Part shown: piece after piece, positions 588 through 27,500 of the stretch | Position numbering within the stretch: the stretch's first letter is position 1 | How the letters are laid out: each line of letters begins with the position of its first letter | Assembly (NCBI GenBank): GCA_950097015.1 | Contig: CATNEN010000012.1 | Span: 1,178,001-1,242,000 of the forward strand | Origin: Macrostomum hystrix | Taxonomy: Eukaryota > Animalia > Platyhelminthes | DNA length: 64,000 nucleotides | Reading direction: 5' to 3' | Program-made: the position numbers and the translations under genes | The notes under the pieces: generated by a model | Databases searched by the model: none | What the model saw: the letters and a program-made list of their open reading frames with translations, nothing else | Told to the model about the DNA's origin: nothing

Positions 588-3500
588 CTGAAGACACGAG
601 GATAAAAGTGGGACTGGCTATTTGAACAAAAATGTGTGGAAACAGAAATGATCGGATATAAACTTAAATTGATGCCCACAAACCTTCTCCAGCCATTTTG
701 AGAGCGGTGTCTGACAATACATAGTGCATGCGTGTTAGGCTCTGCGTCATGTACTCGAATGTGTTACTCGCAATCTCCTAAAAACCATTGGAAATTATAT
801 TTCTTGTTTCCAAAGACCAAAATATATTTATTTAAGAGATAATACGTGCCTGTGATTTCAACTCAAGTTGATCCGGTCTTACCACTGAACTTCTCATGAG
901 TTCAGTTGTTTGTTCAAGGCTGCTAGAATCATTTCTTACAGTGAAGTTGGATAAGAGAGAGACGTAGTTTGAGCGTAACTAAAAATTTGTTGTTAGAATA
1001 TTTCATGTTGCTTAATTTAAATTCTTCGACATTAAAATTACTGGATTACTTAAAAATATAAGTACTTTGAATAATACCTGAGTCATTCGCTGTAAAGCGA
1101 CTTGGTTTTCCTCAACCGTAGCATTCGGACCTAAGAATAACTTAAAATCAACATTCATTAGCGACACTAAGCACAGCATAGTGGACGCGGCACCCTGCTG
1201 GTCTTTTAGCTGAAAGTATTTTGTGAGCTCTTCACTTCGGCCAGTCAGAATATCGGAGATATTGTCCGTTAGAACATCCACGGGAATCGCGGGCGGAACG
1301 ACCTAGGAACGACATAGGACCATTTCGTAAATTATGAAGTAAGATCAATCCGTATTCACAGAACACTAAATAATTAAATCTTACAGTGACAGGAAATTCG
1401 TATCCCTGAGAATCTCCCAGTGAATCAGTGAGCTGCACAGCTATTACAGCAGAAAAATTGTGGCTAGGACTGCCCAGAGGAAAGAATATTTCTGGCGACT
1501 TGGACACTTTTCCAAAGAACAGTGGCGTCTTTCGCTGACTGTCGGGCGAACGAATTTTGAACTCGTAGCGAATTCCACCGAGCTCAATGTCGAACTCTTT
1601 CCAGTCCCAGCAGTTAATCTGGAACTTAGTTGACATTGCTATGCCACTGCGCGGCGCAACATCGCATTTGCCGCCGTAGGGTGGGCTGTTTACGATTAGG
1701 CGTTGCTCCAGCGATACAGGCCCCTCCTGCTTGTAGTTTCTGCATGTTACTATTTAGCATGTAGTAGCTTGCCTTTGGCAGAGTGTTCTCTCGGCGAGAG
1801 AAAGTGGCCGAAGTGAAGCCCTCTGAAAATGGACACGTGACTACTGCTGCCAAAACAGAAGGCTAACTTGCTATCTAGTTAAAAATAGTGCTTTCAAGAA
1901 CTTTGAAAAATAGGGTAGTAATCGGTAATTTCTCTCTTTCCCGGCTCTGTGAGAAGTCGCCCCGGTGGGGCTGATGGTCGACGCGCACAGGACAGAGGTG
2001 TTGCACGTGGGCACCGACGTCATCGCCGTGTGAGAGGACTTCCGGTAGCTCGCAAGCTATGAGCCCGAACTCCATCGCTACATCGTCTCAAACAGGAGAA
2101 ATCGAGGCCTGGCACGTGGCGCATCTGCTCAGGAACGTCTTCAACTAAGCTGCGAAGGACAGCCTGAAGGTAAGCCTCTTCCGCCCGTCCGTGGAGCCGA
2201 TCCTACTGTACGGCATGGAAGCGGTGCCGATGACCGACACACGAGAGTGAGCCCTGGACGCGCTGTACAGGTCCCTGCTGCGTTACGCCCTGGGCGTGCA
2301 CTACCCGAGAGGTTGCCGTCAAGAGACCTGATGGCCGCGCCGGCGTTCCAGACATTAGCGTCACCAAGCGCAGGCGCCGCAAAATGCTGCTGCGCCACTG
2401 CCTGCGGAGTCATGGACGCAGCGATCAAGACCCTTTCGCCCTGGTCCTCCTGCACCAGCCGATGGAGTGGAAGAGCCAAGGCAAAGGGCGAACTGTGACG
2501 CTGACTGACTGCTTTGTGGCTGACTTGCAGGCGCTGGGTCTCAGCCCCCAGACCACATCCGCCTGCCCCTCCCGTCTGTTTCGTGATTGCGTGTGCGCAA
2601 GAGTTCCTTAGCTGTTGCGTGTCTTGCGTATCTTTCCATATAATCGCTAATTTGGACCTTAAATACATCGCAACTAGGTAAGCAAGCCCCATGCTCATAC
2701 CTAGGCCACTAACAGTTGACAGGTCATCCAGCCGTTGCACGGCCGCATCGGTTCGGTGCATTTGCCACATGTACTGCAGCGGCAGGAATTTGTGACCGCA
2801 GTTCTGCCGACAGTCCACTTTATAAATTAGTTTCTTTTCCGAACTAATCTTTCGATCGCAGTTGGAGACGCAGCTGAAAAAAAGAGCATTGATGCTAGCT
2901 CGTCATCGTAAAAATGGTGCAGAGTTCTTAATAATAATAATAATATTTGCAGGAGGGCTGGCACATCGTTTGGTGACACTAGACCCGCAACCAGCCCATT
3001 TCGCTGACTCCTGAGCACACACGCGCACAGGACATCTGCCCTGACTTTCTTATCGTCTGACAGTGTACACTTTACTGCGCCTTGGTGGTTGGCCCTTAAG
3101 GGCGTAAATTACACGACAAGCCCCCAAGCCTTCTCTCCGCCGCTGCGCCCTAAATGAATGTGGCCTTGCCAAGGAATCGAGCTCAGGGACATTGATGCGA
3201 GAGACAAACGCGTTAACCGCTATGCCACTGACCCCCCCTGCAGAGTGCTTACCTAATGCTGACAACTGGAGCCTTTTGAATGCGAACATGCAGCACAGTT
3301 TCCTTAAAATCCCACCGCGAATCTTTGTATACAAATACTCGAAACAGATATGTTGAATTCGGCAGAGTATCATAGGTGTTGAGGCTTAGGTTTCCTGCTG
3401 CCGTACTGTCTCCTTGCAGCACGATTCCGAATCCGTTGCCAAAGCAGCCTTGGTAGTGGTAGGCATCCTGAGTTACTGGTGGAGTCACGCGCTCGGTTAA

Positions 3501-6500
3501 GTTAAAAGGGGCACTGGAGTTCTCGCTTAGTTGCAAACACATCCAAACAAAATAAAAGCCCGTCAAATTTCCCGGATCAACATCGTAGTCACTCGTGAAC
3601 GGAGATGCTGCTAATAGTACAACTTGATTGTAATCAGCTTCAACTGGTGCGGCAATCCCGGCTAGCTCAACGGGTGTTGGAATTATCCGCAAAAAGAAGT
3701 GTCGGGCAATAGACACCGCTGGTTCCACTGCAAGCATGCTTAAGTTGAGGCTGACTCGGTACATGCCGTACGGCAGGCTGCGTTTTGGCAGCCGCAGCTC
3801 CAGTGAATTCGGCAAAGGCATTGTGAAGGGCATTAGGCCAGGATAGGTATCGATCCACCAGACACTGGAAGTAACGTCGGTCTTTGTGCAGTTTAGCTCC
3901 AGCTCTGTGAGCACAACTAGGTCTATAGACCTTCGCACTTGCAAGGGATTTTCCAAGTCAAAGGGAATTACAAGTGTGCCATTGTGCGTAAAGTTGAGCA
4001 GTGGTTCAAAGCAGTATCGATCCAGAACTATTGCCAAGACCTCAGCTGTGGCATTGCTCACATGATTGAAGGCGTAAAGTTGGGCCGAGTATGCTCCGTA
4101 TGTAGAGTACAGGTGCTTAAAAATAAGCGTGGTCGTAGAGTATGATATCTCAGTAAAGTTCATTCCTTTGCTAATGGCGTATGGCTGACACAGTTGATGA
4201 ATACCAAAACACACGCCAGGTGTTGCATCGCCAAAGTTAATAGCAAAGCAGCCATAGGTGCCAAATCTGGCCACCTTGATGATAAATGTAGTGGCGTTAA
4301 ACGTAAGGACGCTACCGTTTGTGCGAAAGCTGCCTATGATTACAGCATCCAGTTCCACATTTATTTGCCTTTGTTCGTAGGCTGTAGACAAAAGGTTAGA
4401 GCAGTTCGCTTGAAGGGTGCGGTTCCCGATGGCTTCTCTCGCCAAGTTCATCGAAAAGCACAACGTGTTACTTGGACCGAGAACGTCGGCGTACTTCTGC
4501 TGAGCAAAAAAAGTGGCCAAGCGAATCAAACAGAATACATTTGTGACATCTTTGCCTGCATGACTGAGGCACACCCTAAGGAATGCAGGAGGATAAACCA
4601 CTGTACTGTTGTAGTCGACGATTAAATCAGACAATCGCTCCAGAATAACTATAGGACCAAACGTGGCGTTGCGTGCACCTAGACTGTTTAGGACGACAAT
4701 AGTTATGGTATAGTTGCTCACAATCTCATAAGTAAAGTTGGCCACTATTTTCTTATCGGCCGGGGCAAAAGCCTCAACAGTACGACTCGATCCCATCAAG
4801 CCAAAATTGAATAAGCCGTTAAGATGCGAACCTGAAGAAACAATTGCACTGATTAGAATTGGCTGGCGCCTTTCGTGCACTAAATCTCCCAGCACCTGCA
4901 AGCCATCGATCGCCTCCTGACAGGTCACTTCAGCCTGCGCCGACAGGTTAGAAACTAGATTAAAGCAAGTGGATCGCAGATTCACTGGCGGCCCAATCAT
5001 GTCTGATCGACAAGCCAAAACTATCACCAGTCTCGTTTTATTAGCTAAGTAAATCGATATTGGGCTGTCTGGACCAAACAAAATCTCACACGTTACATTT
5101 GTTGGAGCAGTGGGCTGGCTGAAGTACAGGTCGACAGTAAAGTTTAAAACAGCAGTCGAAACCACGCTAGGTGCAACCAAAGTGACATTGGTGAGAGCGT
5201 GCTGTACCGTCACTTCAGCTACAATTTTTGCTTGGGAAGAATGATAGTTCTGTGCAATAATCGTGAGGTTATACACCCCAGGCTTCATGTAGGAAATTTC
5301 CAGTGTGTCCATAGCCGTCGCAGACAGCCTTTGCTTATCGGTATAGTTGAATACCCTGCCATCACCTGGGTAGACAGTGTAATAAACGTGAGATCCATTC
5401 TCAAGGGAGAGAAACACAAGGGTGGACTCATTTGAGACTAGCCGATACTTTTCAATCGTCGCATTAAAGCCTGTTACAGTAATCTGCTTCATTACGTATA
5501 ATGGGCGAATCGTGGTTGAGAACTGGTTAGAACATTTCACCGTGATGTTCGCAAACGGCTCATCAACGACATACTGAAAGGTGAAATTTTTATTATCGAA
5601 TCTCCCAAGAGCGAAGCTGGTAACAAACGTGTCATCCGTAGGCAGCTCTGGAGCTATCCAGCATGTGACATTGCTCATGCGGGAGTAGTTAGACCCCTTG
5701 CGCATCTTAATCTGAACGCTGGCATTCAGTGGGACTACTGTTGGCTGGTAAGAAAGGCCCACGGACAGAAAGTCATTCAAATCAGCTACTATTGACGCTA
5801 CTCTATTGATGCGAGCTTCCCCGAACTCATTCCAGAATCGGCAAGTGATTGGCATGTCGCCAACATCATTGGTGTAGCGGTAGACAGTGTCAAATGAATA
5901 GCTTCTAAATTTTAATGTATGGTTTAACGTTAGCCAGTCCCATGTGAAGCTATCTGCATTACCATAAGCCACTTCCGTGTGTACAGCAGATCCAGCATCC
6001 CAACTGAAGCTAACGGTCAGTGAAGCATTTGAAAGGAGAATTTCGTTCGACAATCGACACGTTGCATTTTGTATAGGAATGCCCATGCATTGAACTGGCA
6101 TGTTGAGGTGCTCACACCACCTGTTGTTGCTTGAGTCTAGCTCAGTGTAAGACCCATTTCTGGAGCTGTTAAATGTCACGCAGTAGTTTGACAAGCTTTG
6201 GCACTGCTCGATTGTGACATTTAACACGACGAAACAGAAAAAGTTGGCAGTTCCGCTTGGTGCCAAAGACTGACGCAGACTATCTGTTTGACATTGAATG
6301 GTCAGAGCTGAAACTTGACTATTTGAACCGTTTAGTGTAAGATGAAAGCTCACAAGGTAATTTGTTTGCGGGCTGAGCGCTTCGTCTATTGGCAGTCCTG
6401 TAACGTGCTGCAGACTAGCTTGTAGAGTGAAATGCGTTGGATACCTTGCTAGCCATGACGTATTGCTCAGGTTTAGCAACGCACCCGAAGCTCGTGTGTC

Positions 6501-9500
6501 AATCAGCGGGATGCAGTTCAGAGCTAGGGGCTGACAGATAATGTTGTTGTTCAGGTTTATCTCTTGGTAACTGGCGTTTTCTCCATTATTTGATGCTAGA
6601 CAGACATAATTAGCTCTAGTGCAGCGCCAGTACGCTAGGGTGAATTCTGCTATCAATGGTATAGTCATAGCATTGCTGACGTTCAGCCCAAGACCAGTCT
6701 GCTGAGGATCTGCCAAGGTCGAATTGTTAAAAACGGAGCTCACAGTAAGACAGGCCAAAGATCCGGTACAGTTTTTCTCACTGAAGTGCAGGTCAAATCG
6801 AAAGTTTTCGTCTCCGTCCAGCACTTGTGCGATGGAAAAGTTACCGGACACTGCTCTGATCCGGGCGTTTATTAGAACTCGATACCAAGTGGTCCTGATG
6901 TACGGCTCTGTCTGATTCAGCTCAAATAGCAATAGTTCGGTGTCAACAGGTGGCTGACAGACAATGAAGTTTTCTATGCTTTGGCAGCTGGCATTGTTAA
7001 ATGAGTTTTGATCAACGAACTTGGCAGTTGGTGATTCCACCGTCGCAATGCAAAAATATTTGACTTGTTTGCATCGTCGTCCGCTTTCCAGAACTAGGCT
7101 GGCGCCCACACGAAATGAGAAACTCTCTCCCAGATTCCGGGCAGCCTGCGGATTTCCAGAGACGAGCCAAGTCGATTTCGACAGCCAATAGTCAGGGAGA
7201 TTGGCAGGAATCGATGAGCTCTGAATTGACGAAAAGTAAACGGTAAAATTGAAGTTCACAGACGACCACACTGCCTCGCTAATATTAGCCGAGCCATTGG
7301 CAGCCAGTAATTGTACTGTTACAGATAGGTCTCTTTGTAAGAGACGAGTCCAATAGGACAGCAGTGAATTGTTTGTTGTGATTAGGACCTGGATGTCGAC
7401 AACTATAAAGAGCAAAAATCGAAACAAGAGCTTGTAAAACTTTATTTCGGTCACTAGAAAACAAATTAATTTTACTTACTTGGCTTGCAAGCGAGTCTGG
7501 AGAAGACCCAACCAGCGTAGCAACCGCACTTCAGGTCATATGTGCCATTCGCAGCAATGCAAACGGAGTTGTTGATATGAAAGCAGTTCAAATCGCTTTC
7601 ACATGTTTGACTGAAGTTTCGAGCTGAAATAAAGAATTTATTCATGCAGATGCCATTATAATCTTAGAGCCTGGTGGGAATATATCTTCTCTAACGCATT
7701 GTTATGCTATCTATTTTATGTTCACTTAATTCCATGCTGATTTGCACGATTCACTAAAAAAATGCAACGAGTCGCTTAGAAAGTTTGTGCAGTACGACTT
7801 GCGCTTTTATGAGCTTTTTTATGAAAATTAATAAGCTAAATCACGTTTCTACAACTTTACTTGTACAATTCTACAACCCTTCTACATTTTTACGGTTCTG
7901 GGAGCAATGAGTACTTTGTTCCATTTCCTTGCTTAATTAATGCTTCTTTATGCTCAAAAGGACAAGGATTAAGTTTTTTATGTTCATCGAATTATCTTAC
8001 CTGGCTCAGCTTTTTCAGTGGACAACATCCGCATGGAAACTCGACCTCCCTGCAGTTCCGGTGACCATTCCAGTTGCTCGCTCTCTCCAGTCAGCTTTGT
8101 TGTAAATAAGCATCCTGCGCCGGCTTTGTACCACCACGCGCTGCCGCTAGACGAGGCGCACGCGCGTTGATCGCCCCAGTCGAAGCTGCTAAACGACAGT
8201 CCATTGAGTGACGCAATTGCGGAAGCTTCATCCGGACCGTATGCGCTTGTGCAGTTGCCGACAGTCAGTCGGTAGTTCTGGAATACCGGGCCAATCCGGA
8301 AGCTGTTGCATTCCGAGTAGCGATACTGACCAGCCCTGCGAACAAAAATGCGTTTACTTTAGACAGCTATACCCATTTGCAGCGCCTGATGAAAGATAAT
8401 AGGAGATAGGACAAGTTTCATGATTCATAAGCTGCAAGCGACAATATTTTACCTGTCCCAATAGTCAACTCGCAGTCGATAGTTCCTAACCAACAACAGC
8501 AGCTGCAGCAATTCGTGTCCTAGCCAGAATGAGCTGCTGCCATTGGCCTCGTGCCGGAAGCCATTCTGATAGGCTGCCCAGCTCTGATTCATACTCCAGT
8601 TCTTGTCCCAGTTTCGGTAGAACAACAGCCAGGCTCCTTGACAGTCAATGACTTGCGAGCTGCCCTGCGGGCTCACCAACTGAAGCTGGGTCTTATTTTC
8701 GCAGGACAATTTATCACCTGGGAACAAATGATAAAATTTTTTCTTAAGGAAAAAACTCTAGTACACCTATACAAAGAAATGGTAGGGTAATTTTTTTGCC
8801 TGACTACATTGATACGCTCGTATCTACGAGCCGTATCTGCATCACTATCCTCACTTACCACTGCCACCACTGCAATAAACTACCTTTACTACCGCTACCT
8901 TCACTGCATTTAATGCACCGCTACCTTCACTGCAAGGGGTTCAGTGGGAGAGCGGCTAACGCGAGTTTCCTCTCGCACCAAGGTCCCTGAGTTCGATTCG
9001 GCAGCGACGCCACATTAATTTAGAGCGCTTGGGGGTCTGCCGTGCAATTTACGCCCTTGAGGGCCAACCTCCAAGGCCTGGTGAAAGTTGTACACTGCCA
9101 GACGATGAGAAAGTCAGGGCAGATATCCTGTATGTGTGTGTGCGCCAGGAGTCAGCGAAATGGGCAGAATTGCCTCCTCGCTGGCTGCGGGTCTACTGTC
9201 ACCAAACGATGTGCCATTGCACACAGTCCGTTTGCTTTCCCTAGACGATCAGTTTTAGGGTTTTAGATGACGAAATACTCAAGGATAATTGTGAATTGAA
9301 ACCTGCAACCTACCGTCAAAATCTGTCGCCCACAGGTCCACTTTCATGGCCCCGTTGGTCGTGTAGGAATCGGGTTCAATGAGCAGCTTGCTGGCATAGA
9401 TGTAGCGCCTCAGCCTGACTATCAGTGGGCTGGACATGAGGTAGGATGACACAGACAGTGCACTCTGCGGAAAATTCAACACAACTTTAGTACACAATAA

Positions 9501-12500: not shown

Positions 12501-15500
12501 TTGTTTTGACAGATAAATGATTCTATCACAGGTCCGCACTGGGCAAATTACTAACACGCAAGTTAGCTTGACGTCTAAGACGAATTTTGCATGGTAGACC
12601 TCGTCACTCACCTTCTGCCGGGCAGCCGTGAAATCCAAGCTCAACTGATTGACAAGCAGAGTCTGTCGGCGTAGACAGCACCTGGAGGAACGCTGAATGA
12701 GCCGTCACGGAGCGATTTAACCAAAGGCTCGAGTTGCTATCTCTTATTTGGATCGTCTAGAAAAGCCGAGGAAATAAAATATATACAGGATATCAGACTC
12801 GTGAAAGACATATACGAGCGTACACACACAGTAAGATTCTAAATCTACTCACGTAGTTAGCAACGGATCTATTGCTAAGGTCGGTGAAGTTCAGCGCAAT
12901 GACATGAAAGCTTGAGCCCACTGAGCAAGGGCTAACCAGGCGAATGGTCACATTGGTGAAATGGTGCAGACTCGAGAAGTTTACATATAGCCTCTCTGGA
13001 CTCCGGGTGTCCAAGGTAAGCGCTTTAGTGAGGCTACTGCTCTTCATCGTAATGTTTGAGAAGGGCACCAGAGCGCATTCTGTTTAGAAATTTGCATTTT
13101 TAGAAAAAATTGGGCGTTTTTTGTTTCTCAGGACAGTGGAAAAGAGTCCATATTTTGGACATTTACATTTGACATCAAAGCACGGTAGCATTTTCTCATC
13201 TTCATGTCTTTGCAGGGTTCATAAACCAAAAAAATTAGCAGCTTTCTCCTTACCGAGTGGGAATCCCAGCAGTCCAAAACGAATCACACTGAGCGTATTT
13301 AACGCCTTCTTGGGCCTCAACGCCAGGAGCCTGGCGTCCACCGGTGCACTCAGGTCATGCCGGATCATCTGCTTGTCCTCGGTGTTGCCTAGGAAGGTGG
13401 AATTACCCGAGTGCCTGCTGTTCGCCCACTGAAGGCTGTCGGTGTCCGCAGTCGCACTAAAGAGCAGCTCAAACTGACTGACAGCGTTACCGCCGCCGCC
13501 CGCGGTGACAACTGACAGCACACGATGCGGCACAGGGAACTGGACCATGAGGTCATCATTCAGGCTGGTCTGGTAGCCTGGCTGATAGATTTTACTGCCG
13601 TAGGTCATCGGCGAGCCCCAGCTGATCCGTGCCGATGTGATTGGTCGGTTTGTATCAAACAGGCTGGTCAATTTCCTCGCGGACATCTGGAAGGCTTCGT
13701 ATTGAATATCTGGCAGCTTTGGTGGCTCTTCGATGCCGGACGCTGGGCCGCCGAAAATCTCCAGCTTGCCGGCCATGATGCCCTGCACACTGGATGCGTA
13801 CAATCGGAAGTTTTTGGCGGCGATTAATGGCTGCAGCACTTCAGTTGAGCTGCCGCAGTAGTCCGGCGAGCTAAACGGACCGTACAGGTACTGAAAGTAG
13901 CAACAGGATGAGATGTCGGAGACTTCAGGATTCACTTACCCGTGTGAAATCAATGACAACTTTTAAAAATGACGAAAAGGCAGCATAAAGTACAGAGCTC
14001 ACGAGAGCAACTATAACGAGCATTTTATAAAGCTCTAGCTGGAAACTCACATTAAAGTAATAACTCCGCAATGCATAGCGGTACCAATAGTTAGCATCGT
14101 CAGAATACTGCAGATAGTAGCGCTTAATCAGCTCTTTGGTAATGGCTGAGTTGTAGCAGAAGGCCGCCCCCACTGTGATACTTTGAGCCACGATGCGAAC
14201 ACTGAAGCTGGCTTGAAGCCACTCATCTGGGTCAGTGCTTGCGGCACGAAAGTAGCCAATGTTCGGGCGTGGATCGGCTGAAGAGAAAATTTTAATACTT
14301 AAATAAAATAGTATATACAACCTTGAATGCACCTTTATCCTGCAGGGACACACTGGAAATTTGGAGGTCCATCAAACAGCTTACGAAAAACGCGTAAACC
14401 CCCAATTTAAGAATTGAGCATGGGAGACAAGCCAGCCAGAACGGAATGTTCCGAGAATCGTCTAATAATTTGTAGTACCAGAGGGATTAAAGCTTAGATA
14501 GGAAGTAAGACAAGGCCTCAGTAAAAATGTGCTCACCTGAATCGCAGAATAAAATAGAGCAAGTAGAGAGAGAGCTGGTGGCGGAGTTGGCGCACTTCTC
14601 GCGGCAGTTGTTTGCGGCGTCGTAGGGGCTGCCCTCCACGAAGCTGCTAGGCGAATCCAGGCCAATTCGCTGATCCCAGGAGAAGCAGGCGTCCCTGCTG
14701 CTGCCACTTTGCGTGCAGAAGTTTCCAGCGAAGGAAGGCAGCTCTGTGGGACTCACAGCGCAGTGCTGGCCGCTGGCGTAGCCATCCGGACTGCCGGGTC
14801 GGCAGCAGCGCCACATAACCGTGTCTGTCCGTTGATTCTCACGGTAGAATGTAGGGTTTGTTATCAGAGTGTCTGAAGCATACTCAAAACCGTTGCCTCC
14901 ATGGAAGAATTTCAAGTCAAATGTCAAAGTCCTGATTCTTTGCCAGTTGTCCTCCTCGCCTCTCCAAACAGTCTGGTCATAACCGTCACCATTGGAGATA
15001 GATACGTGGTGCAATCGCTCAACGTAGCCCGTGCAGCGATTCGGAATCGATAGGCAGTCTACGAGGTCAGTTTTTACTCAGCATCAAGCCAAAATCTATA
15101 ATAATCATATAATAATTGCAGGAGGGCTGCGAGCAATGGCACATCGTTTGTGTTAGCGTTTGAAAAGCGCTTACATCGGTGCTCCTTTCAATCAGCGACC
15201 TTCACCTGCATTTCGACCCACCCAGCGCTCAAAATAGACCTGAGCGGGCCAGACCGGCTGACTTGACGGCCTGGGAAGCAATGACGCAGAGACCGAGAGC
15301 CTGTGCACCCTATCAGCCTGCAAACTCGTGCCAAGAATGCTCGCGGCTGGTGTGTTGGGTGGGGGACCATGGCAACGCGGGGCAGAGAGATAACTGCTTG
15401 TGTGTAAAGCCCTCCGACCCCCCTACTGCTAAACACTGCCCTATTGCTTGAATATAAAATACACTGCTTCGCAGATATGCTCCGGCACTGAAGCTTTGAG

Positions 15501-18500
15501 ATGTGAGTCTCACACTCATAATTGTTGGCCTCTGTGGTCAGTACGAGTCTTTCGGTTAGTGTCGGCAGAAGGTAGCAGGCGGCAAATAAACCTGCTATAG
15601 TTTGGTGACACTAGACCCGCAGCCAGCGAGGAGGCAATTCTGCTCATTTCGCTGACTCCTGAGCACACACGCACACAGATACTGTATGCGGGCATACGCT
15701 CACACAGGGATGTGCATATCTGCTCTGAATTTCCTATCGTCAGTTAATGTACACTTTGATGGTTGGCCCTCAAAGGCGTAAATTGCACGACAAGCCCCCC
15801 AATTGCCTTCTCTCCGCGGCTGCGCCCCAAATGAAAGTGGCCTCGCAGTGGAATCGAACTCAGCGACCTTAGCAAACGCGTTAACCACTCTGCCACTCAC
15901 CCCATCATAAATCAATCAGCAGCATTAATGAAATTTTAGGCCTACAGTTAAAATACTACTCTGTATAGTTACAGAAATACTACGGCATAATCCTCGAACC
16001 AAACTGACTGAAATCAGTAGCTGGTTGATCCAGTCGACTAGAGACGTCGAGAAATCTCACCCAGTCCTTATTATATCATTTACCAACGCGTTTTAACAAA
16101 AAGTTAAAATCAATTTTCTTGAGTATTTTAGAAACCTTTGTTTTCGCTTAACAGGTGACTATATTAAAGTGTTATGTATTTTTCTCGTGAGATGTCTCTG
16201 CGTATCAGTTGGTTTGGTTCTATATCATAGCATTGCCCTTGGGCTCAATTCTAGAGTCTTAAGTTGACATCCCCTTTTATGAAGAAGAATCATTTCGTAA
16301 GTTTAGTACATTTAGTACTTAGGTTTTTTCAGATTTTTTGTTTAATTTCAATCCATTTCAGACAATTTTTTCCCTTTTCTTGATTTCCTTTCTAGCGAGC
16401 GTACAGGTGCGTTCATGTGTATTTAATTCTGTGCCGATTCAAACGAAAGGTAAGCATACTTAACGAGACACTTACACTTCTGGTAAGGTGCGCACTCTCT
16501 GTGCGCCCAATGGGCCAGCTGAGGTGTAAAAGCTATCTGGAACAGTTGCACACAGAACAGGTGGAAGCTGCTACCGTTGCCGAACAAAATTTGTTGGCTA
16601 AAATGAGATGTTTGGAAAAACTGATTTTCGTTTATCTTAAAATATATTTAGTCTAGGAGTGTTTTTAAACTTTATATAATTCAGAGAATGTGCAGCAACG
16701 TAAAAAAGCTCAGCTCACCCATCGATGGTCTCAAGCGGATCAGTGTCAGCATTGGGCACAGTGGTGAGGAAAACCAGTTTGATCCTGTCTAGAATCTGCA
16801 GCGTGCCCGCCTGCGAGTCCACCGAGATGCAGATGTATCTCCAGAGCAAGCTGAACAAAAATGTGCCAGTCAGACTTGCAAACTGGCCGGATCGTCGTCG
16901 CACGTACAACTCGAAGTTGACCAGACTGGTCATTCTGAACGACAGGCTACCGTTGGTTGTCTGTAGCACCGGACTGGCAAAGCTGTACGATGCATTCACG
17001 TACAAGTAGAGGCACAAGGTGTACACTGGAGAGTCGACCGTAAGGCCGACGCCTCCGGGTGCCAGGAAGCTCGAGTTTGTCGCCCCAGACAGGTAGAGCC
17101 CGCCACCGGACTTATAGGTGGGTCCGAATACCCAGCTGACGTTATTGCTTGCAACGCCATGGAGTAGCAGCTTTCGCTGCTGATCCGGCGTTGAAACTGC
17201 CGTTTCATTCGGCCCGACAGTGCCATTGTCAAGGGGCCAAAAAGCCAATCGAAATGCTCGAGGGTCCGGGTTAAGAGCGTCTGGTGCTGCAAAGAAACGA
17301 AAAAATATTTTATGAGATGGAATTCATGTGGTTGATTTATGCAAAAAAAATTAAAGACACTCAAGAACTTTCAACCAGGCTCTATACTCGTAGTTCACCT
17401 AGTTAACGTTTGTATGGTACAACTACAATGATATAATGTTGACAGCCCAATTTAATGTACCAATTTACCTAGGGAAGATTCATAGCATATCATGACAAAA
17501 TATTTTTGTCTTTCTAAGTATATCGAGTTCATGTGTCCGCAATAAGAGCCATTGTTATCTGTCTGGTTTACTTACAGAACGCTTGCACCCTGTAGGACGC
17601 ACTTTTGACATAGTAGAGAAAGCTCTCTGATTTGGACGTCAGAGCGGCGCTTGCGGGAGCATCGGCTGCGCTGATCAGGGGCCAGTCACTGCTGACATCT
17701 GAATTTTTCAGCAAGTAGTTTCATATATATAGTCAACATGTAGTCAGCAAGTATTGTATCCGATACAGTGGCGTATGAGAAAATACAACTTGCAGATTGG
17801 AAAGGAGTTGTACGCTCGTAAGCTCGAACAACTGTGACAATACCATAAACTCAGGTTAAAATTATTATAAAACCACAAAACGATGGTAAGACAAGACGTT
17901 CTGTGTGTGTTTTATGTAGGGAATTCAAGCTTTCGAAAATATATGTTTACCAAAAGGCATTCTCTGCATCAGTTGGTCGGTATTGGTGTCGAAATTCAGC
18001 ATGGCAGTCTCGAAATTCGTCCGGTTGGCGTCGTTGAATCTGGTCGCCTTCAGTGCGGCGACTGCCACGGAGGCGCAGACAGCGGGCAGCTGCTGGTCGC
18101 AGAATCTGAGCAGCCCGATAAGGCTCACGGTCGAATCGCTGTTCAGGTAGTTCAGGCTGGGGCTAATTGTACTGCGCTTCACTGTTATCATATGCGGTGG
18201 CCGGGGCGACTCCACGTCTGTGGGTGCGTTTGAATGGAAATTGTTTTGACGTTACTGACAGCAATCTCTCTGTGTTGATCTTGTGTCAATTTGTGATAAT
18301 GCTAACGCGTTTCAAAACTCCGACGGATGCGAAATCTCAAATTATGCGAAGTCAACAGGCCCAGCGTCGGAAAGACACGAAAGAGAAACTTCTCAAGCAA
18401 TACATATCTCAAGGATTCAAATCACGTGAGTCAATGATCCTATTGCCGCAGTGCTTGTGAGGCACTACTGTTCCACAAGTGGAACTGTGGAACTGTTCGA

Positions 18501-21500
18501 TGTTTCAACAGTGGAACATCGAAATATGTGGTATGAAAGTGAATATAAGCAAGCTAAAGTAGATTCTAGCAAAAAAATAGCAAATGTGTCCTACTTAGAC
18601 ATCTGAACATGTAACATTGTCAGAATTCTCCGGTGAAAGGAATTTCTAGGAGACTCTAATGCGTCTCGAACTAACTAGGGACTAGTTTGCTCAACCACTG
18701 TGGACCTCTCAGGTGTGCGTAGGTTCCCAGATGTTGAACCTGTTTACCAGTTTTGTCCTGACATATCTTATAGAGAGAAATAATTGATTGGCCAGACTAG
18801 CTACTTAACAATATCCGACCCTATTCACAAATTATATTTTTACTATATCCATATTAACCTAGACGTTATAGGACCGATTGAAGTGATTGCACGACACCAT
18901 TAGTACGAGTACAAGCTGAACAAGTTGCCAATTTTATAAGGATTCGGCGTTCAACGACTGTTTGATTTACTACTTCAGCATTTGATTTACTGAAGACTAT
19001 CGCGTCTTCAGCACCAACCGCATCGTTTATCGAACCAGGTGGCGCCTAGTTGCGACGTCACCCAAACTAATCAACTTTACAAAAAGGCAGTCTATTCTGA
19101 TAAATATAACTTTATGCTCGAGCTAATTCGAGCTAGAATTGAGGGTGCTCTCACATTCGATAGCGTGCACAACAATTTCGCTGGCACCGAAGCAGCAGCT
19201 AATTCTGTTTCGTCGCACCACGAGGTACCTGCCGCGCCAATTGCAGACATACTCAATCACATTGCCGGGACTGTAGATCCCCAGCGAGGCCTGACAGAGG
19301 AAACTATTAGGCATAGCAGAAAAATATGGATTATCCACTGTTGTGTCCGATAGCCAGCATTCGTAGCTTCTGAAGGCCTCTGAAAAGTGACGAGAGTGCG
19401 ATTGATCCAATTTATGTTTTTAAGTCCAATTGATTTTTCGAATCCATTTTTCGTGTGTATCTTCAATTCATACCTGAATTCCAATTACTATTTTCTGACC
19501 TGGACTTTCTATGGCATAATCCAATTAAAACTTCGATGTTACAAGGGTAGGTAATCAAATTAGGTTCATTTATGCAACCAAGGCGAAAGATTTATTCGTG
19601 GAATGAGCCAACGTGGAAGAGACGTAGGCTGTAGTTGCTGTATTTGAAGGAGGTTGCTTAGGGCGGCGGACTCACGTCTTGCTGGTCGGGGGTTCGATTC
19701 CCGTCTCCACTGAAACAAGTTTGTGTCCTTTAGCACACACTTAACTCTGCACTGCTTCAGTTCACCCAGCTGTTAAATGGGTACCAGCATTCAGCATGGC
19801 GTAATTGAGGATGGGTGTGGCGTCCCCCCAGTCCATGGACTGAACAGCCGTACGCAGCCTTCAGACGCGCCGCGCAATAGCTGCGGCTGTGCTGTCGGCT
19901 GCACATCTGGCCCGATGGGGGCTGGTGTGATAAAAAATTGAAGGTAAGCCTTCAAAACTTGAACTATACAGTTCATTTTTTCCTAAAGACATTTCTAGCT
20001 GGTTTGCAGTGCTTTCTATTATATTTTCTGTTTGTTTTCTGGTCGATACAGCGACAAGCCGGTTTCAGAGTTATCTGAATCCTAATAATCAACCGCGATG
20101 AGATTTGCTCATGAATTTCCTATATTAAGTTATCTTGTAAACAGTCCGTGCCAATTAAAGCAATTTAACTCGGTGTTTGATTGCGCAACGCGGCTCTGTT
20201 ACCTAATTTATTTCTAGCTTAATTATCTCGGTGCGGCTTCCAACGTGCATCAGTTCCGAGTCCGCAGTATATACGACTTACGATATCTCGTATGTAGACT
20301 GTGCATAAATCGAGAATAGAATAATTGTGCACAAATTTGGCAATTATTTTTGCTCGAAATTCGTCAGTCTCCACAACTAATCTATAATGAACTCGGCATT
20401 GTTCCTGACTGCTGCTCTCCTGGCTGCTTGGTGAGTCCTTGAGCTTGAATGCTTGCTAAAACACTCTGAAAGTCACAAATACGCAACCATTTCAGCCTCT
20501 GTTCCGTTGCCAACTGTTCGGAAAGCTGCAGCAAATATGGCGAGGAGAGAGTGGATGGAAATAACCTGTGCAAGTGCAGGTACCTATTCATCAGGGGCAT
20601 CGCGAGCGGAGAGCTGCAATGGATCTGCCGTCTGAATGGCTGCATGGCCTGGAGTGAAGCCGCAGGCCGCAGGGTGTTCTATGAGCCTGGGGCCATTGTG
20701 AAGTATCGTGGGGCCAGCTGCACGTGCGTGAAAGGCTCAGATCCACACCTGGATATTATTACCTTATATCGCTTACAATGCAAAAAGAACTAGAACTTTG
20801 ATGATCTGCTGTCGTGATTGATCGAAATATATACTTACCAAATCATTAATTACCTGGTTAAGGTGAATTAACTATACTAAGTTAACGAAAACTATACTTT
20901 CATACCGAATGTGAAAGTGTTTTTATGTCTAGTTAAAACTCGTATTGACCCCGAGGACTAGGAATTGGTTGCGGCTGACCACCCAACATGAATGAGACAC
21001 CTGTCAACAGGTGTGCTTCATATGCATGATGAATGGATAGGTACTCCATACTGTAGTACACGCACCGTTGACATCAGATCGAAGGTAGTGCCAGACGAAG
21101 CCCACTTGACCGGCATTGGCTGGCAGCTCCACGCGCCACCAGTCATAGAAGGCTGGCCCGTACACGTACTCCAGCGACAGGCCCGGTCGCACAGTCCAGT
21201 CCTGAGTGAAGTCGCCGTCATTTGCTGCACCCACTGGACCAGAAGTGGCTCGAACCTTAAAAAATTATGGAGAGCAAGAATTGGTGGGAAGTTAGACTGG
21301 AGACATTGACTAGAGGCATTGTCATCCTGTCTACCTGAGAGCAGTTGACAGGTGCGCCAACAATGTTGATCGGTTTTGAGACCTGGCTGTAGCCAGTATC
21401 CAGGGCCGACACTTCGCATAGAAACGGATATACAGCCAGGTAGGTGTCGCACTGAATATTGTTCCAGGCCCCACCGTTGGCTAGCGACATCATCAAGCAA

Positions 21501-24500
21501 TGCTTGCCTGGAAAGCTCTGCTGCCAGAAGGACCAGGTCACGGGGCTGCCGTCCCACCACTCCCAGCGACCCGACGTTTGGTTCCAGCGACCGTCGATGT
21601 GCACGAACTTGTGCTGGCTTTGGCTTCTGCAATGAGTTTGATGGTTTCATTTGTAAGCGAACGATAAAATACGCTATCCGCTTGAGGACTACATGTTTTG
21701 AGTAATTAAAATCCATTGAACTTTTGGTTTCCCGATCAAACCAATATAACCCTCAGACCAATTTAATAATAATTGTAGCGTTTAGAAAATATATATCGTA
21801 CCCACAGGAATCGCTGTGAAGATGTAATTAAATCTGTTAAATATTGAAGAAGCTAAGATGATCTCACCCAGCGGTGGAGTGGTAAAACAGGTAATAAAAC
21901 AGTTGCTGCTCAGCTATGCTCCTTGGGCTGGCCAGGTGACCGCTGCCATTCCAGGACATGGACTCGCAGATCGCCTTGGCAACCATCGGTGGGGCAACCG
22001 AGTGTGGGTGCCGAGTAGTACTGTTGAGTGGCATTGGGGCCCAATAGCAGCTGGACTTGTGGCGGAAGAAGCCAAATGGGCAGTCTGCGAGGGAGGTTAA
22101 TGGAAGAGGTCGAGAGATTTGGCATCTATCATTGAAGTCGAGGTTGAAAATTCTGAAAATTTAATATCTCTAATAGTTGCTCCAAATTGTAAGCCTTTCT
22201 ACAAGGAAATTTCCTCAAGGGGAGCACTGGACATCAGTTTTCGAGCTGGTGTTCTCGATGTGAGTCAGAATCGAAGCTAGCACGGCTCCAATGGCTCACC
22301 ATGATACTGAAGGCATCCACGAAGACTGACTCCAGACGAAACGACAGTCTGGTTGCCCGAGAACTCGATGCGCAGCTCGTCTGTCAGCAGCGGCCTGGGC
22401 AGTGACTGGTTAAAACCGTTGGCAAGCTTGAATATCTGTCAAGAAGCCAAGCAAGAGGTTGAGAGCTGTTCAAGCACCCAACAATGTACGACCGTATGTG
22501 AATGGGGTCGGAGCAGAGCGGTTTACGCGTTTGCCTCTCGCACCACGGTCCCTAAGTTCGATTCCACGGCGAGGCCACATTTATTTGGGGCGCAGCCACG
22601 GAGAGAAGGCTTGGGGGCTTGTCGTGCAATTTACGCCCTTAAGAGCCAACCTGCCAAGGCACAGTGAGAGTGTACACTGCCTGACGATGAGAAAGTCAGG
22701 GCAGATGTACACACAAGTGTGAGCGTGTGCCTGCGTACAGTATCTGTGTGCGTCTGTGCTCAGTAGTCAGCGAAATAGGCAGAATTCACTGGATGTGGGT
22801 CTAGTGTCACCAAATGATGTGCCATTGCCCGCAGCCCTTCTGCAATTATTATTATTTATTATGACGACCGTATGTGACGAATTGACTTACAAAAGGCAGC
22901 CCATTGACAGTCGCGTCTGTGAAAAGAGCCATTGCGCAGGCTCTTAAACTGCAGCTGGAAAGTGGCGTCGTTGCTAAATCGAATAGCACTGGGCAGCTGA
23001 AAGCCAATCAGCCAGTAAAACTTCTTCAGGCGCAGGCTGACGATCTGCCCACTGACAGACTCGGATACCACGTGAGAGGGCGGAATCACGCCGCAATCTA
23101 GAACGTGTAGGAGCTTTTATTCACATTACTACGGATTCGGCACTAACTGCTTTTGAAGTGTTACAATTTAACCTATGCGATTCACATCTATGCACGCTTT
23201 TGAAAATCAAATAGTAATCAGTTTTTCCTTCCAATGCGAAAATGCGTTTGCAAGAACTACTTTCGAATGGGAGCTTTTGGTCAAAATTCATTCTCCTTTG
23301 CTTGCCATTTCTGGCCAGCTCCAAATCTCCGACTACACCTTCGTCAACGAATAAGACAAACTCCATTTAATTAGAATTCCTATAAAATCCTATTAGATCT
23401 CTAATACTCTTCCCGTTGATCACCAACGAAAGGATCTGTGAGTAAACCAAACTTGTGTTTGGGAAAACACTCTTCTCTCAGTAATCCCATCGTAAGTTTT
23501 ACATCTCTGAGATTGTTTACCTGCAGACCATTTAGATATAAATCGATTGAGAGCTCAACAACTAAAGTGGGTGCAACATCAGGAAAAGATAGTCGATTCC
23601 TACGCCTCCTTCTTTCTTGGAAATAAAACCATCTATAATTGGCCTTTGATAAGAACACCAATTCTAAATAATAAGAATACTCATTCAGCTAGACATATTC
23701 AGACATACTAGGAGTCATCATCATATCTACAACTATAGAAAGAATAGAGTAGAAACATTTTAAATATTACACTTTGAGTAGAATGTAAGTATCAGAGAGG
23801 CCACCGATGCAAACAAGCTTGATACAATATCAAGCATATGCAAGAAACCAAGTGCCTTTTGATTGGTGTTTTAGCGTGCAAAAATAATTTGCGAGTGCAT
23901 TGAAGCACAGAAAGAACACCGGAACTCCTCACCGTCGGGATAGCCCAGCAGCTCCAGACGAAGAACCCGACTGTTAACAAACTGTACGGGCACGAATCGG
24001 AGCAGCTTGGCCAGCACTGGCACCGGTAGGTCGAAACGCAGGGGAATCTCGTCGCTTTGCTGGCCAGAGAACGTGTGCTGCAACAGTGGAAAAAGTGATG
24101 AGGCTCCAGCCAATATACCTGGCTACTAATTAATTTAATCACCTCGACAACACCTGCTATTAAGTTGAAGAACAATCGGGGGTGTTTCACAAACTCGAAG
24201 TTACACAACGTTGAAAGCACCTTTCTTCCCTAGGCCAAAATTTCACAACTTAAAAAACTTTTTATGATTTTCATTTCCAGCATGGGACGATGGCTTGTCA
24301 CAAAAGCTTTGAGTTGCACTCCAATATAATAATAAATGGATTGGAAGTGTATGCTTTAGATACTTGTATTGGAAGCAGCAAAAATATAGATGATTATCAT
24401 ACAGGTTGTCATAAGAAGGTACAAATGTTAGCAAAATGACGTCCTTTGCTATGGAGTTTTCGATGTTCAGAAATTTCGAGCCCAGTGAAGTTTCGACCAT

Positions 24501-27500
24501 ATGAAATTATTTGCTTTTCGGCGTTGTGAAACTTCGAGCTAGTGAAAGCACCCCGACCAATCTACGCTTGAAAGTACGATTTGTCCTGACAGGCATCAAC
24601 TTACAATGCTCTCCACGCTGCTGCCTACAGGAAACGAGTTTACTGGTTGCAACATCCTGGCATCGTCACCGTACAGCAGCTGGAACTGGGATATGTAGGC
24701 CATCCACCTGTTCGTGGAGTCGTACATCCCGCCTCCCTGGGTTACTAGGCCGGTGATGCGGTGTCGCACGGGAAGGTTGATGTCCAGTGTGACGGCCGCT
24801 GCAAATGTTGGCAGTGACGGCCACAGCGTGTTGGTTTAAACGGAGAGAATTATCCTAGCTTTTAGGCACTTTTTGTTGGGGAAAAATCCCAGAAAGCAAG
24901 CTCTGATTAGATTATTTTGTTTGAATGAAACGATCTATTTACTAACTACGGCAACATTCTCTAGTTGACTGGTTCTCTGAGAACATGGCGGGTTGCTCAT
25001 ACCACTAAAGAAATACATTGCTGGTGGCAGCCCGGGCAGCTGCTGAGCGTTCAACCGCAGCATGCAGACGGTGGCATGGTCCTGCGGCAGCATTGTGGCC
25101 GGACCGAGCGAGTCGCTCGGATCCAGCTGGTTAACCTGCACCGTTCCATCCTCCAGACCGATTGGGTTGCTCAACAGGTGAACATTGGCTGAGGATCGGG
25201 GAAAAAGCACAAGAGTTAGTGAATAAAATAGAACTATGGTGTCTGACCTGATAACCTTGATGAGTTTACCTGGATTTATCATTTTACCTGACCCAAACCT
25301 GGAGTAAAGAGGGACTGAAATGGACGGAAAAATGTACGAGGCCCTTTGAGTTCGAATCCCCACCATGGATTCTTCAGGTTTGTGCTTGCCATGCAGTCAC
25401 TCCTTTGTACCAGCACTCAAGGCACAGTGGGCTGCAAACTACCACTGACGATTAAAAAGTCAGGACAGATTTGCTACCCTATTAGAGCATGCGCTACCTA
25501 TCCTGATTGTCCGTGTAAATGGCTGTGCAGTGGTCGGTGTAAGGGACAGCACAGGCGGTGTAAGGGACAGCACAGGCGGTGTAAGGGACAGCACAGGCGG
25601 TGTAAGGGACAGCACAGGCGGTGTAAGGGACAGCACAGGCGGTGTAAGGGATAGCACAGGCGGTGTAGGGGACAGCACAGGCGGTGTATGGGACAGCACA
25701 GGCGGTGTAAGGGACAGCACAGGCGGTGTATGGGACAGCACAGGCGGTGTATGGGACAGCACAGGCGGTGTAAGGGACAGCACAGGCGGTGTATGGGACA
25801 GCACAGGCGGTGTATGGGACAGCACAGGCGGTGTATGGGACAGCACAGGCGGTGTATGTGACAGCACAGGCGGTGTATGGGACAGCACAGGCGGTGTAAG
25901 GGACAGCACTGGCCAAGAGTCGCTTCCCGGACTTACACAGTGCCGGATAGCCGTAGACCTCGAATTCAGCAAACGACAGACGGCGACGGTAGAATGTTGA
26001 CTTGCGAACACCGGCGAACTGAGCCAACTGGAATGAGTTTGTGACATCAGTTTGTACATTCGATTGCGCCTTATAAACAAAACTCACACCCGAGCTCTCG
26101 GGGCCTTACCCGGAAAGTGTCGACACTCCAGAAGTGTTCCCTGAGATACCCCTCGCCTCGCCTAGCCAGAACATCCGCACTGGCGTCCGTAGGCGAGGAG
26201 GCATTGGCAACGATGATCTCGGCGTACTCCAGCTCCTCGTAGTCTGTGTTTAGTGTGATAAGTTCTATTGAGAATCGTAACATACAATAGAATTTCTAGC
26301 ACATGACAATGATCATAGATGACAGACATCTGGTTTCTCGACAATAGTTATAGAGGCTGGTTGGACCTACCAAACTTCATGTTGTCCCGGGAGCAGGCCA
26401 GGATGCCGCAGGTAGCGTAGGTCACAGCCGGGTCGGTTGTGTAGCAACCTTTGTAGCCGTAGGCGTTGCAATCTCGGCAATAGTTCACTGAGACGCTCTT
26501 ATTCGACCCCGGATAGTAGGTGTCCAGCTTACACCTGTCCGACACTGTCTGGGGCGTATTTGAGCTCCAGCTCTGGCAGGGGATGCCGCTGGCTGTGACA
26601 TTCCGCATGCCGTAGTAGGAATTTGCCGAAGTGCTGGTGCTGCACACGTCGCCGCCGTAAGCATCTGTAGGTTTCGGTTCAGAGGGATGCTTCGCGTCAG
26701 ATGGTCCGAGCTAGTAAAGTAAAATAAAGGATTAAAAATGAAGGACTCGCCTAGATTCTCTATAGCGTCCACGACCCTGATGAAGATGATGTAAGTCTGC
26801 TGGCCTAGATCCACCAGCCAATAAAGATAGTCGGTGAAGTACTGCTCAGTGTCGCTCTGGTACGACCCGCCGCTGCCAAAAAAACCGCTAAGCGAGCCGT
26901 CGTTGCCGCGGCCGCCGGTGCTACCAGAGTCAACGCTGACCCGCTTGAATCTCGACTGCAGGTAGGAGCGCAGGCGAGCCTCTGTTGTTTCTGTGGGGTC
27001 GAGTTGCATTGCCTAGTTTTACTTGGGGAGTCTAATGTTTAAATATCCCAATTTAATGTCCCTGTGCAACAACATCAGTGTAATGTTCAATATTCCATAT
27101 CCAAATATCCCCTGTCCTAAATCCCCCTGTCCTAATACCCCCTGTCCTAATATCCCCTGTCCTAATATCCCCTGTCCTAATATCCCCTGTCCTAAATCCC
27201 CCTGTCCTAATACCCCCTGTCCTAATATCCCCTGTCCTAATATCCCCTGTCCTAATATCCCCTGTCCTAATATCCCCTGTCCTAATATCCCCTGTCCTAA
27301 ACCCCCCTGTCCTAATACCCCCTGTCCTAATATCCCCTGTCCTAATATCCCCTGTCCTAAACCCCCCTGTCCTAATACCCCCTGTCCTAATATCCCATGT
27401 CCTTATATCTCCAGCACAATATTCTCACCAGTGGGGCACCCGTAGAGCTGAAGGCGCATTTCACCGACCGTCTGCTGAGTGACTCTGTACAGCCTGAGGT

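Follow-up and report, generated by a model that had tools for sequence, protein, structure and literature searches.

The question raised by one locus in the genome of the flatworm Macrostomum hystrix is whether a complete gene for a small secreted protein lies antisense within an intron of a receptor gene. The locus occupies positions 20387-20793 of a 64,000-nucleotide stretch (contig CATNEN010000012.1 of assembly GCA_950097015.1, positions 1,178,001 to 1,242,000 of the forward strand), the whole of which is referred to below as the window. An initial annotation of the window had proposed such a gene on the plus strand. The analysis reported here indicates that the small, nested two-exon gene is almost certainly real; the wider interpretation, that it is a selectively maintained nested gene for a secreted binding or signalling protein built of finger modules, is given a probability of about 0.72.

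As read from the window sequence, the gene begins with an ATG at 20387-20389, and the coding part of its first exon (20387-20430, 44 nt) comprises 14 mostly hydrophobic codons (MNSALFLTAALLAA) followed by the TG of a codon split in phase 2. A predicted intron of 65 nt (20431-20495) follows, with GT and AG at its ends (the donor, at 20431, reads GTGAGT, and TTTCAG up to 20495 serves as the acceptor), and the second exon (20496-20793) would encode the end of a signal peptide, two cysteine modules and a TAG stop codon at 20791-20793. The pre-protein is 113 residues long after predicted splicing, and the translation of 20497-20793 is identical to that given in the initial annotation, from LCSVAN... 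to ...QCKKN*; the start codon, canonical intron, second exon and product length that it had described were all found in place. Since the frame 5' of exon 2 contains no ATG, the protein requires removal of the intron. The program-made list of open reading frames (ORFs) represents the gene solely by an 80-residue, GTG-led piece (20551-20793), and the description of that piece as headless was accurate. The cysteine spacings also proved to be as described: C-x13-CxC-x16-C in module 1 and C-x25-CxC-x17-C in module 2. The predicted mature part is basic, with approximately 14 lysines and arginines and 9 acidic residues counted from the translation.

The evidence that carries this gene model beyond a single locus came from its paralogs. 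The published M. hystrix assembly comprises about 220 Mb in 42 contigs (PMC10468722). Sequence searches were run with exon 2, whereas exon 1 was compared by eye and by script; a six-frame search of 220,453,370 bases in those 42 contigs located seven further loci, and a profile built from the four intact copies recovered the same eight loci. These eight family members (41-53% identity) comprise four intact copies, including that in the window, and four that have decayed. Of the other three intact copies, to which the window copy is 49-53% identical, one lies on contig 5 near 5.25 Mb, and the remaining two form a head-to-head pair on contig 29 near 0.70 Mb. Eight cysteines (C11, C25, C27, C44, C49, C75, C77 and C95 in exon-2 numbering) are invariant in all four intact copies. 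The earlier description of an eight-cysteine protein therefore stands for the conserved core, while the predicted mature chain of the window copy contains a ninth, Cys22, which lies within an N-C-S sequon just past the likely signal-peptide cut and is found in three of the four intact paralogs.

The architecture upstream of exon 2 is likewise shared. Exon 1 comprises exactly 44 coding nucleotides, with a phase-2 donor, in the three intact paralogs (MNSTAHLTAAILAA, MNSTALLTAAILAA and MTRFIFGTAIFLFA), and two of these begin with MNST..LTAAILAA, nearly identical to the window copy. The bases immediately 3' of the acceptor are kept in each intact paralog (CCTCT in the contig-29 pair). The 120 nt 5' of the ATG can be aligned among the copies, including a TATA-like element. 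In the window, putative promoter elements of this type span 20267-20298 on the plus strand, 90-120 nt 5' of the ATG (GTATATAC at 20267-20274 and TATGTA at 20291-20296); the CAGTATATAGAGG of the paralogs aligns onto 20288-20301, and the distance from TATA to ATG in the contig-29 pair resembles that in the window copy. The initial annotation had also drawn attention to an initiator-like TCAGT. That motif is indeed present at 20364-20368 on the plus strand, 19 nt before the ATG, but it is absent from the aligned 5' regions of the paralogs, which does not favor an initiator role; its AG could equally be that of an acceptor-like site.

Comparisons among the copies further indicate that the coding sequence has been under purifying selection. 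The ratio of nonsynonymous to synonymous substitution rates (dN/dS), calculated by the Nei-Gojobori method (NG86), is 0.28-0.31 between the window copy and the contig-29 pair, in a comparison where dS exceeds 1 and silent sites are saturated. Within the young contig-29 pair itself the ratio is 0.70. In a neutral simulation at 0.3-0.6 substitutions per site, the probability that a copy would acquire no stop codon and keep all eight cysteines was at most 3e-4. The possibility that an ORF and splice signals came together here by chance is contradicted by the simulation and refuted by the paralogs, together with the homologues from other phyla described below, and its probability is regarded as negligible.

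Members of the family were subsequently found well beyond M. hystrix. When 1.84 billion representative proteins were searched exhaustively with the family profile, 16 matches were returned, four of which were spurious and were set aside (P0003, a translated tandem repeat; P0011, an immunoglobulin protein; and P0014 and P0016). The twelve true relatives, all annotated as hypothetical or uncharacterised, comprise two proteins each from Macrostomum lignano, the nemertean Tubulanus polymorphus and the annelid Owenia fusiformis, one from the chiton Liolophura sinensis, and five from bulk assemblies (ENA, Logan and JGI). The closest, M. lignano PAA68186.1 (gene BOX15_Mlig010735g1; 116 residues, with its own signal peptide), was matched by the profile with an E value of 1.8e-42 and the second M. 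lignano entry with 6.9e-35, while values for the Tubulanus, Owenia and Liolophura proteins ranged from 7e-8 to 4e-4. A word-index protein search with exon 2 gave no match; as the 14-row alignment of the family (A2) retrieved just two known proteins by the same route, blanks in that search are uninformative. In the 14-row alignment seven of the eight cysteines are invariant, and C11 is gapped in some of the distant rows. The relatives have in common a nearly invariant motif in module 2, CxC-x2-G-x-DP-x-L-x-D-x2-TLYH-x2-C, of which the window copy carries a version shorter by one residue (DPHL-DIITLYRLQC). On the basis of these sequence comparisons, the window copy can be placed in an unnamed family whose members occur in flatworms, nemerteans, annelids and chitons.

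The gene layout is also preserved within the genus: in Macrostomum a short signal-peptide exon is followed by a phase-2 intron and by the remainder of the protein in one exon, and the gene for PAA68186.1 has two exons, as in the window copy, with an intron of approximately 1 kb. The contig-5 copy and PAA68186.1 share 79% identity, and the only orthology supported in the family tree (99/97) is between those two. The terminal branch of the window copy (0.34) is approximately 2.5-3 times longer than those of this orthologous pair (0.11-0.14), which suggests that the window copy arose before M. hystrix and M. lignano separated. The members from outside the flatworms possess additional N-terminal (and, in Owenia, also C-terminal) cysteine-rich parts, or tandem copies of the domain, that the Macrostomum form lacks. 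The N-terminal cysteine-rich segment is common to the annelid and nemertean members, and the added C-terminal segment of the Owenia proteins reads CCGC-x-RM-x-IDP...; the segments shared by annelids and nemerteans hint at an ancestor longer than the protein now found in Macrostomum.

One of the M. lignano relatives required closer reading of its gene model. The UniRef entry A0A1I8H5Q8 (P0002; 'PH domain-containing protein', 1024 residues, from NIVC01001271.1), whose family domain was matched by BLASTP with 54% identity and an E value of 2e-37, is a chimeric model that joins a piece resembling malate/lactate dehydrogenase, a small secreted gene of this family, and a PH/PDZ gene. The family domain within it is actually encoded by a head-to-head gene pair (1233-1963 and 2882-3776 at that locus), as on contig 29.

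The introns of these paired genes carry minisatellites. Those of the contig-29 pair (contig 29, 699.8-703.5 kb) are packed with a minisatellite of 50-bp units, in 38.8 copies and 4.8 copies, and the 3' splice acceptor recurs in every unit together with the opening bases of exon 2, such that dozens of decoy acceptors are generated; the same minisatellite is found in two of the decayed copies (L005 and L018). The introns of the M. lignano pair contain minisatellites of 41 bp in 18-22 copies, in sequence unlike the contig-29 repeat. The 65-nt intron of the window copy contains no minisatellite.

The position of the small gene within a receptor gene on the opposite strand was next addressed by comparing the surrounding exons with those of related genes. 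Along the minus strand of the window, Pfam models identify a Lectin_C domain (39977-40273), a Kringle (26351-26710), the second half of a C-type lectin domain, also matched by Lectin_C (21260-21646; paralogs 59-61% identical), a weak F5/8-C domain (13222-13935), Fibrinogen_C (7987-8757), PKD (3252-7475) and REJ (1235-1753). Two further minus-strand frames complete the series: the second lectin frame lies upstream of the host intron, the next exon frame (19126-19419; paralogs 38-47% identical) lies downstream of it, and another follows at 16718-17323. For the Kringle, the second lectin, these next two frames and REJ, paralogs of matching order and strand occur on contigs 29 and 7, and these frames are therefore taken to be exons of a single gene resembling polycystin-1/REJ proteins. 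The interval from the lectin exon to the one that follows it, measured between matched residues, is 0.27-0.29 kb in the host paralogs and approximately 1.96 kb in the window, and the excess is accounted for by the small gene and a 280-bp repeat that resembles a short interspersed nuclear element (SINE). The collinear exons, together with a host intron approximately seven times shorter in the paralogs, thus support, at the level of sequence comparison, the location originally proposed, antisense within an intron of a receptor gene, here one read from the minus strand; the intron itself is enlarged. The further suggestion that the small protein might be a ligand of its host did not fare as well, because paralogs of the small gene are nowhere near paralogs of the host, and a functional tie between the two is therefore without support.

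The host family is itself present in multiple copies, including four tandem paralogs on contig 29 (3.55-3.73 Mb), and others on contigs 7 (11.777-11.801 Mb), 39 and 1, and its set of N-terminal domains (C-type lectins, Kringle, discoidin-like, fibrinogen C, PKD and REJ) is unusual. The repeat in the same host intron (19655-19937, plus strand, approximately 280 bp) lies outside the small gene. It has more than 1600 first-look candidates genome-wide, the scored copies of which are 90-93% identical, and it displays a tRNA-like head with a B-box-like GGTTCGATTCCC and a terminal A-run. It is probably a tRNA-derived SINE, judging from these sequence features; ARAGORN called no tRNA within it.

What the gene encodes was approached through structure prediction. 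AlphaFold, given four sequences, produced a model with a predicted local distance difference test (pLDDT) score of 66; from the 14-row alignment it produced one (AF2) with a pLDDT of 83.8 and a predicted template modelling score of 0.67, and each of the five models scored above 80 in pLDDT. The latter model is entirely beta, with eight strands and no helix. In a Foldseek search of the PDB, fibronectin type I (FnI) pairs occupied four of the top five rows. In a wide search with VIA-align, the 24 highest rows consisted almost entirely of FnI modules or pairs, subdomain 1 of von Willebrand factor type C (VWC) domains (VWF C4 and C6, CCN3, collagen IIA), VWF or mucin modules, and beta-microseminoprotein, and module 2 superimposed on its best matches with a root-mean-square deviation (rmsd) of 1.2-2.0 A over 34-40 residues. 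A shape search of the Atlas returned clusters resembling MIG-18 (Fn1_2), otogelin (Fn1-VW) and VWC2L amid unrelated rows; an ESM Atlas feature search gave no usable match.

These searches, and the fact that module 2 exhibits the cysteine pattern of FnI with a longer last loop, are the basis for the view that the modelled fold seems finger-like, resembling FnI or VWC subdomain 1, without being assigned to either family. The FnI finger, as found in tissue plasminogen activator (tPA) and fibronectin, is a module of approximately 45 residues with the pattern C-x(about 23-29)-C-x-C-x(about 6-10)-C, folded into one two-stranded and one three-stranded antiparallel sheet, and FnI in the strict sense is considered a module of chordates. 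Relative to FnI (PF00039; fibronectin, tPA and factor XII), module 2 is similar in its C-x(23-29)-CxC-x(n)-C spacing and its small all-beta form, and FnI provides the best structural matches: single modules align over 37-40 residues with an rmsd of 1.8-2.7 A (Z 3-4), and the pairs 3ejh and 2cg6 align to the model over 74-76 residues. The differences lie in the loops, in that the last loop of FnI has 6-10 residues and that of module 2 has 17, while the first loop of module 1 is short (13 residues). The VWC and SVWC proteins (Vago, CCN3, collagen IIA, VWF C) are, like the window protein, small, secreted and disulfide-rich, and VWC subdomain 1 is finger-like, with shape matches to VWF C4 (Z 3.6), CCN3 (Z 2.6) and collagen 2A (Z 2.5); the VWC2L-like Atlas row is a molluscan cluster. 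No Pfam match to VWC or SVWC (PF00093, PF15430) was found, and their CxxCxC and CC motifs are absent from the window protein. The MIG-18-like proteins of Caenorhabditis elegans (Fn1_2, PF23003), which are invertebrate secreted proteins composed of FnI-like modules, provided the first Atlas row (template modelling (TM) score 0.40 by query, over 60 residues), but they show no sequence match to the window protein, are larger (382 residues) and are specific to nematodes.

Two other assignments were considered and rejected. An interleukin-17-like cystine knot was prompted by the arrangement C-x4-C ... C-x-C; no Pfam IL17 match was found, no IL-17 or cystine-knot growth factor was among the top structural matches, and the spacer of 19-25 residues seems, in our judgement, too short. 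The UniRef label DUF4789 (PF16033) on a 68-residue M. lignano fragment (P0018) could not be reproduced: a PF16033 match would have to exceed 27 bits, yet hmmscan at E values up to 10 gave nothing for P0018, for P0001 or for the M. hystrix copies, and the PF16033 model had no match genome-wide, while a literature search for DUF4789, PF16033 or Mlig010735 found nothing useful.

Taken with the predicted fold, the sequence suggests how the protein might act. The hydrophobic leader, formed by exon 1 and the first codons of exon 2, would direct the protein to the secretory pathway, and cleavage near Ala20/Asn21, according to the -3/-1 rule, would release a basic chain of approximately 93 residues that carries a sequon for glycosylation, N-C-S. 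This chain would fold as two consecutive small beta modules with two disulfides each, similar to fibronectin type I fingers; by analogy, pairing of cysteines 1-3 and 2-4 would give C26-C42, C40-C59, C64-C92 and C90-C110, and the ninth cysteine would be free or usable for dimerisation. The conserved face of module 2 might then grip an extracellular partner by beta-strand addition, as FnI and VWC modules do. The most likely role is that of a secreted extracellular binding or signalling protein.

Alternative roles for a real gene of this kind must be weighed at the same point. An antimicrobial peptide or toxin would also be small, secreted, disulfide-rich and basic, and both the birth and death of family copies and the dN/dS of 0.70 within the young contig-29 pair would fit such an effector; the binding or signalling role is nevertheless favored, because the module-2 motif has been kept over long spans in four phyla and dN/dS is 0.3 in the older comparisons, unlike in fast-evolving toxin and antimicrobial families. 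No known toxin or defensin fold appeared among the Foldseek or VIA-align matches, and an effector is considered quite unlikely. A similarly low probability is assigned to a reproductive-tract or seminal-fluid protein resembling beta-microseminoprotein (MSMB/PSP94), which is likewise a secreted, two-domain, all-beta disulfide protein of approximately 90 residues. The prostate glands of Macrostomum secrete many small novel proteins, which lends the idea some plausibility, and the N-terminal domain of MSMB3 is among the structural matches. This weak match, however, is confined to that domain, which superimposes on module 2 with a Z of 3.2 and an rmsd of 1.6 A (28% identity over 36 residues); the MSMB fold is in any case shared with FnI. 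The 10-cysteine pattern of MSMB differs from that of the window protein and its family, which have 8-9 cysteines, and no Pfam match to PSP94 (PF05825) was found.

A more ambitious interpretation, to which a slender probability is attached, is that the family represents ancient, spiralian-wide finger-module ligands, comparable to cytokines or matrix cues, with SVWC/Vago in arthropods and MIG-18 in nematodes as counterparts; it would have remained unnamed because no profile detects its members, and the nesting might then reflect co-regulation or a ligand-receptor pair. The finger modules of tPA and fibronectin bind partners of the fibrin(ogen) type.

Several observations weigh against the interpretation of a maintained gene for a secreted finger-module protein. 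With respect to the fold, all of the structural matches are weak (Z no higher than 4.0 for the best VIA-align row, no Foldseek row below an E value of 0.2, and Atlas TM scores of 0.40-0.47), such that homology to FnI is not established. No Pfam match, fn1 and Fn1_2 included, was found by hmmscan for ten family members at E values up to 10, and a sequence-profile search of the PDB, also at E values up to 10, gave no match. The description of the protein as FnI-like or VWC-subdomain-like agrees with the spacing of module 2 and with the rows of the structure searches, although their scores are weak and no Pfam model matches. An origin of the two modules by internal duplication is not supported, as hhalign gave a probability of 5%, which is not significant, for module 1 against module 2. 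With respect to the gene, its expression and the 20430/20496 junction are predictions from the genomic sequence; no canonical AATAAA or ATTAAA occurs on the plus strand within 900 nt past the stop codon (none before 21705), the sole poly(A)-signal-like hexamer close to the stop being AATATA at 20826-20831. Family copies do die, as the four decayed loci illustrate (by frameshift, loss of the C-terminus or stop codons), and the family tree gives the window copy no supported M. lignano orthologue.

The points that concern the gene bear most directly on the possibility that an intact but silent duplicate landed in the host intron and that its frame has simply not yet decayed. The lack of a canonical poly(A) signal near the stop, the fact that half of the family loci are pseudogenes, and the degenerate form of the aligned TATA element in the window copy (TATGTA) would all be compatible with such a copy. 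However, a second, perfect TATATA lies 23 nt further upstream, and the copy has kept its frame, its two splice sites, its signal peptide and all eight cysteines although dS exceeds 1 against every paralog, an outcome to which the neutral simulation assigns the low probability given above; a silent duplicate is therefore judged unlikely. The paralogs, the cross-phylum homologues, the dN/dS values and that simulation together argue for a real gene rather than a product of chance.

The maintained gene for a putative secreted finger-module protein is a well-supported addition to the M. hystrix gene set, and the program-made ORF list offers only a headless piece of it. With it goes the definition of a family, as yet unnamed, of small secreted proteins that is conserved in four spiralian phyla and invisible to Pfam. 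The fold is seemingly akin to the FnI and VWC fingers, modules that are mostly discussed for chordates. If that fold and a binding partner were confirmed, the family would offer a tractable entry to extracellular signalling or matrix biology in this flatworm genus, in which RNA interference and transgenesis are available for M. lignano. The locus also illustrates cleanly how a gene can come to sit in a host intron. Taken by itself, the gene is a modest finding.

Elsewhere in the window, long open frames composed of short tandem peptide repeats occur in minus-strand frames at 25501-25932 (HRLCCP...), 27022-27424 (GILGQG...) and 39676-40002 (VEAEGLKDQRR...); these are probably intronic minisatellites and not coding. 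On the plus strand, a 984-codon open frame at 60324-63278 matches DUF1759 with an E value of 3e-9, a domain typical of the gag-pol of Pao/BEL-type retroelements.

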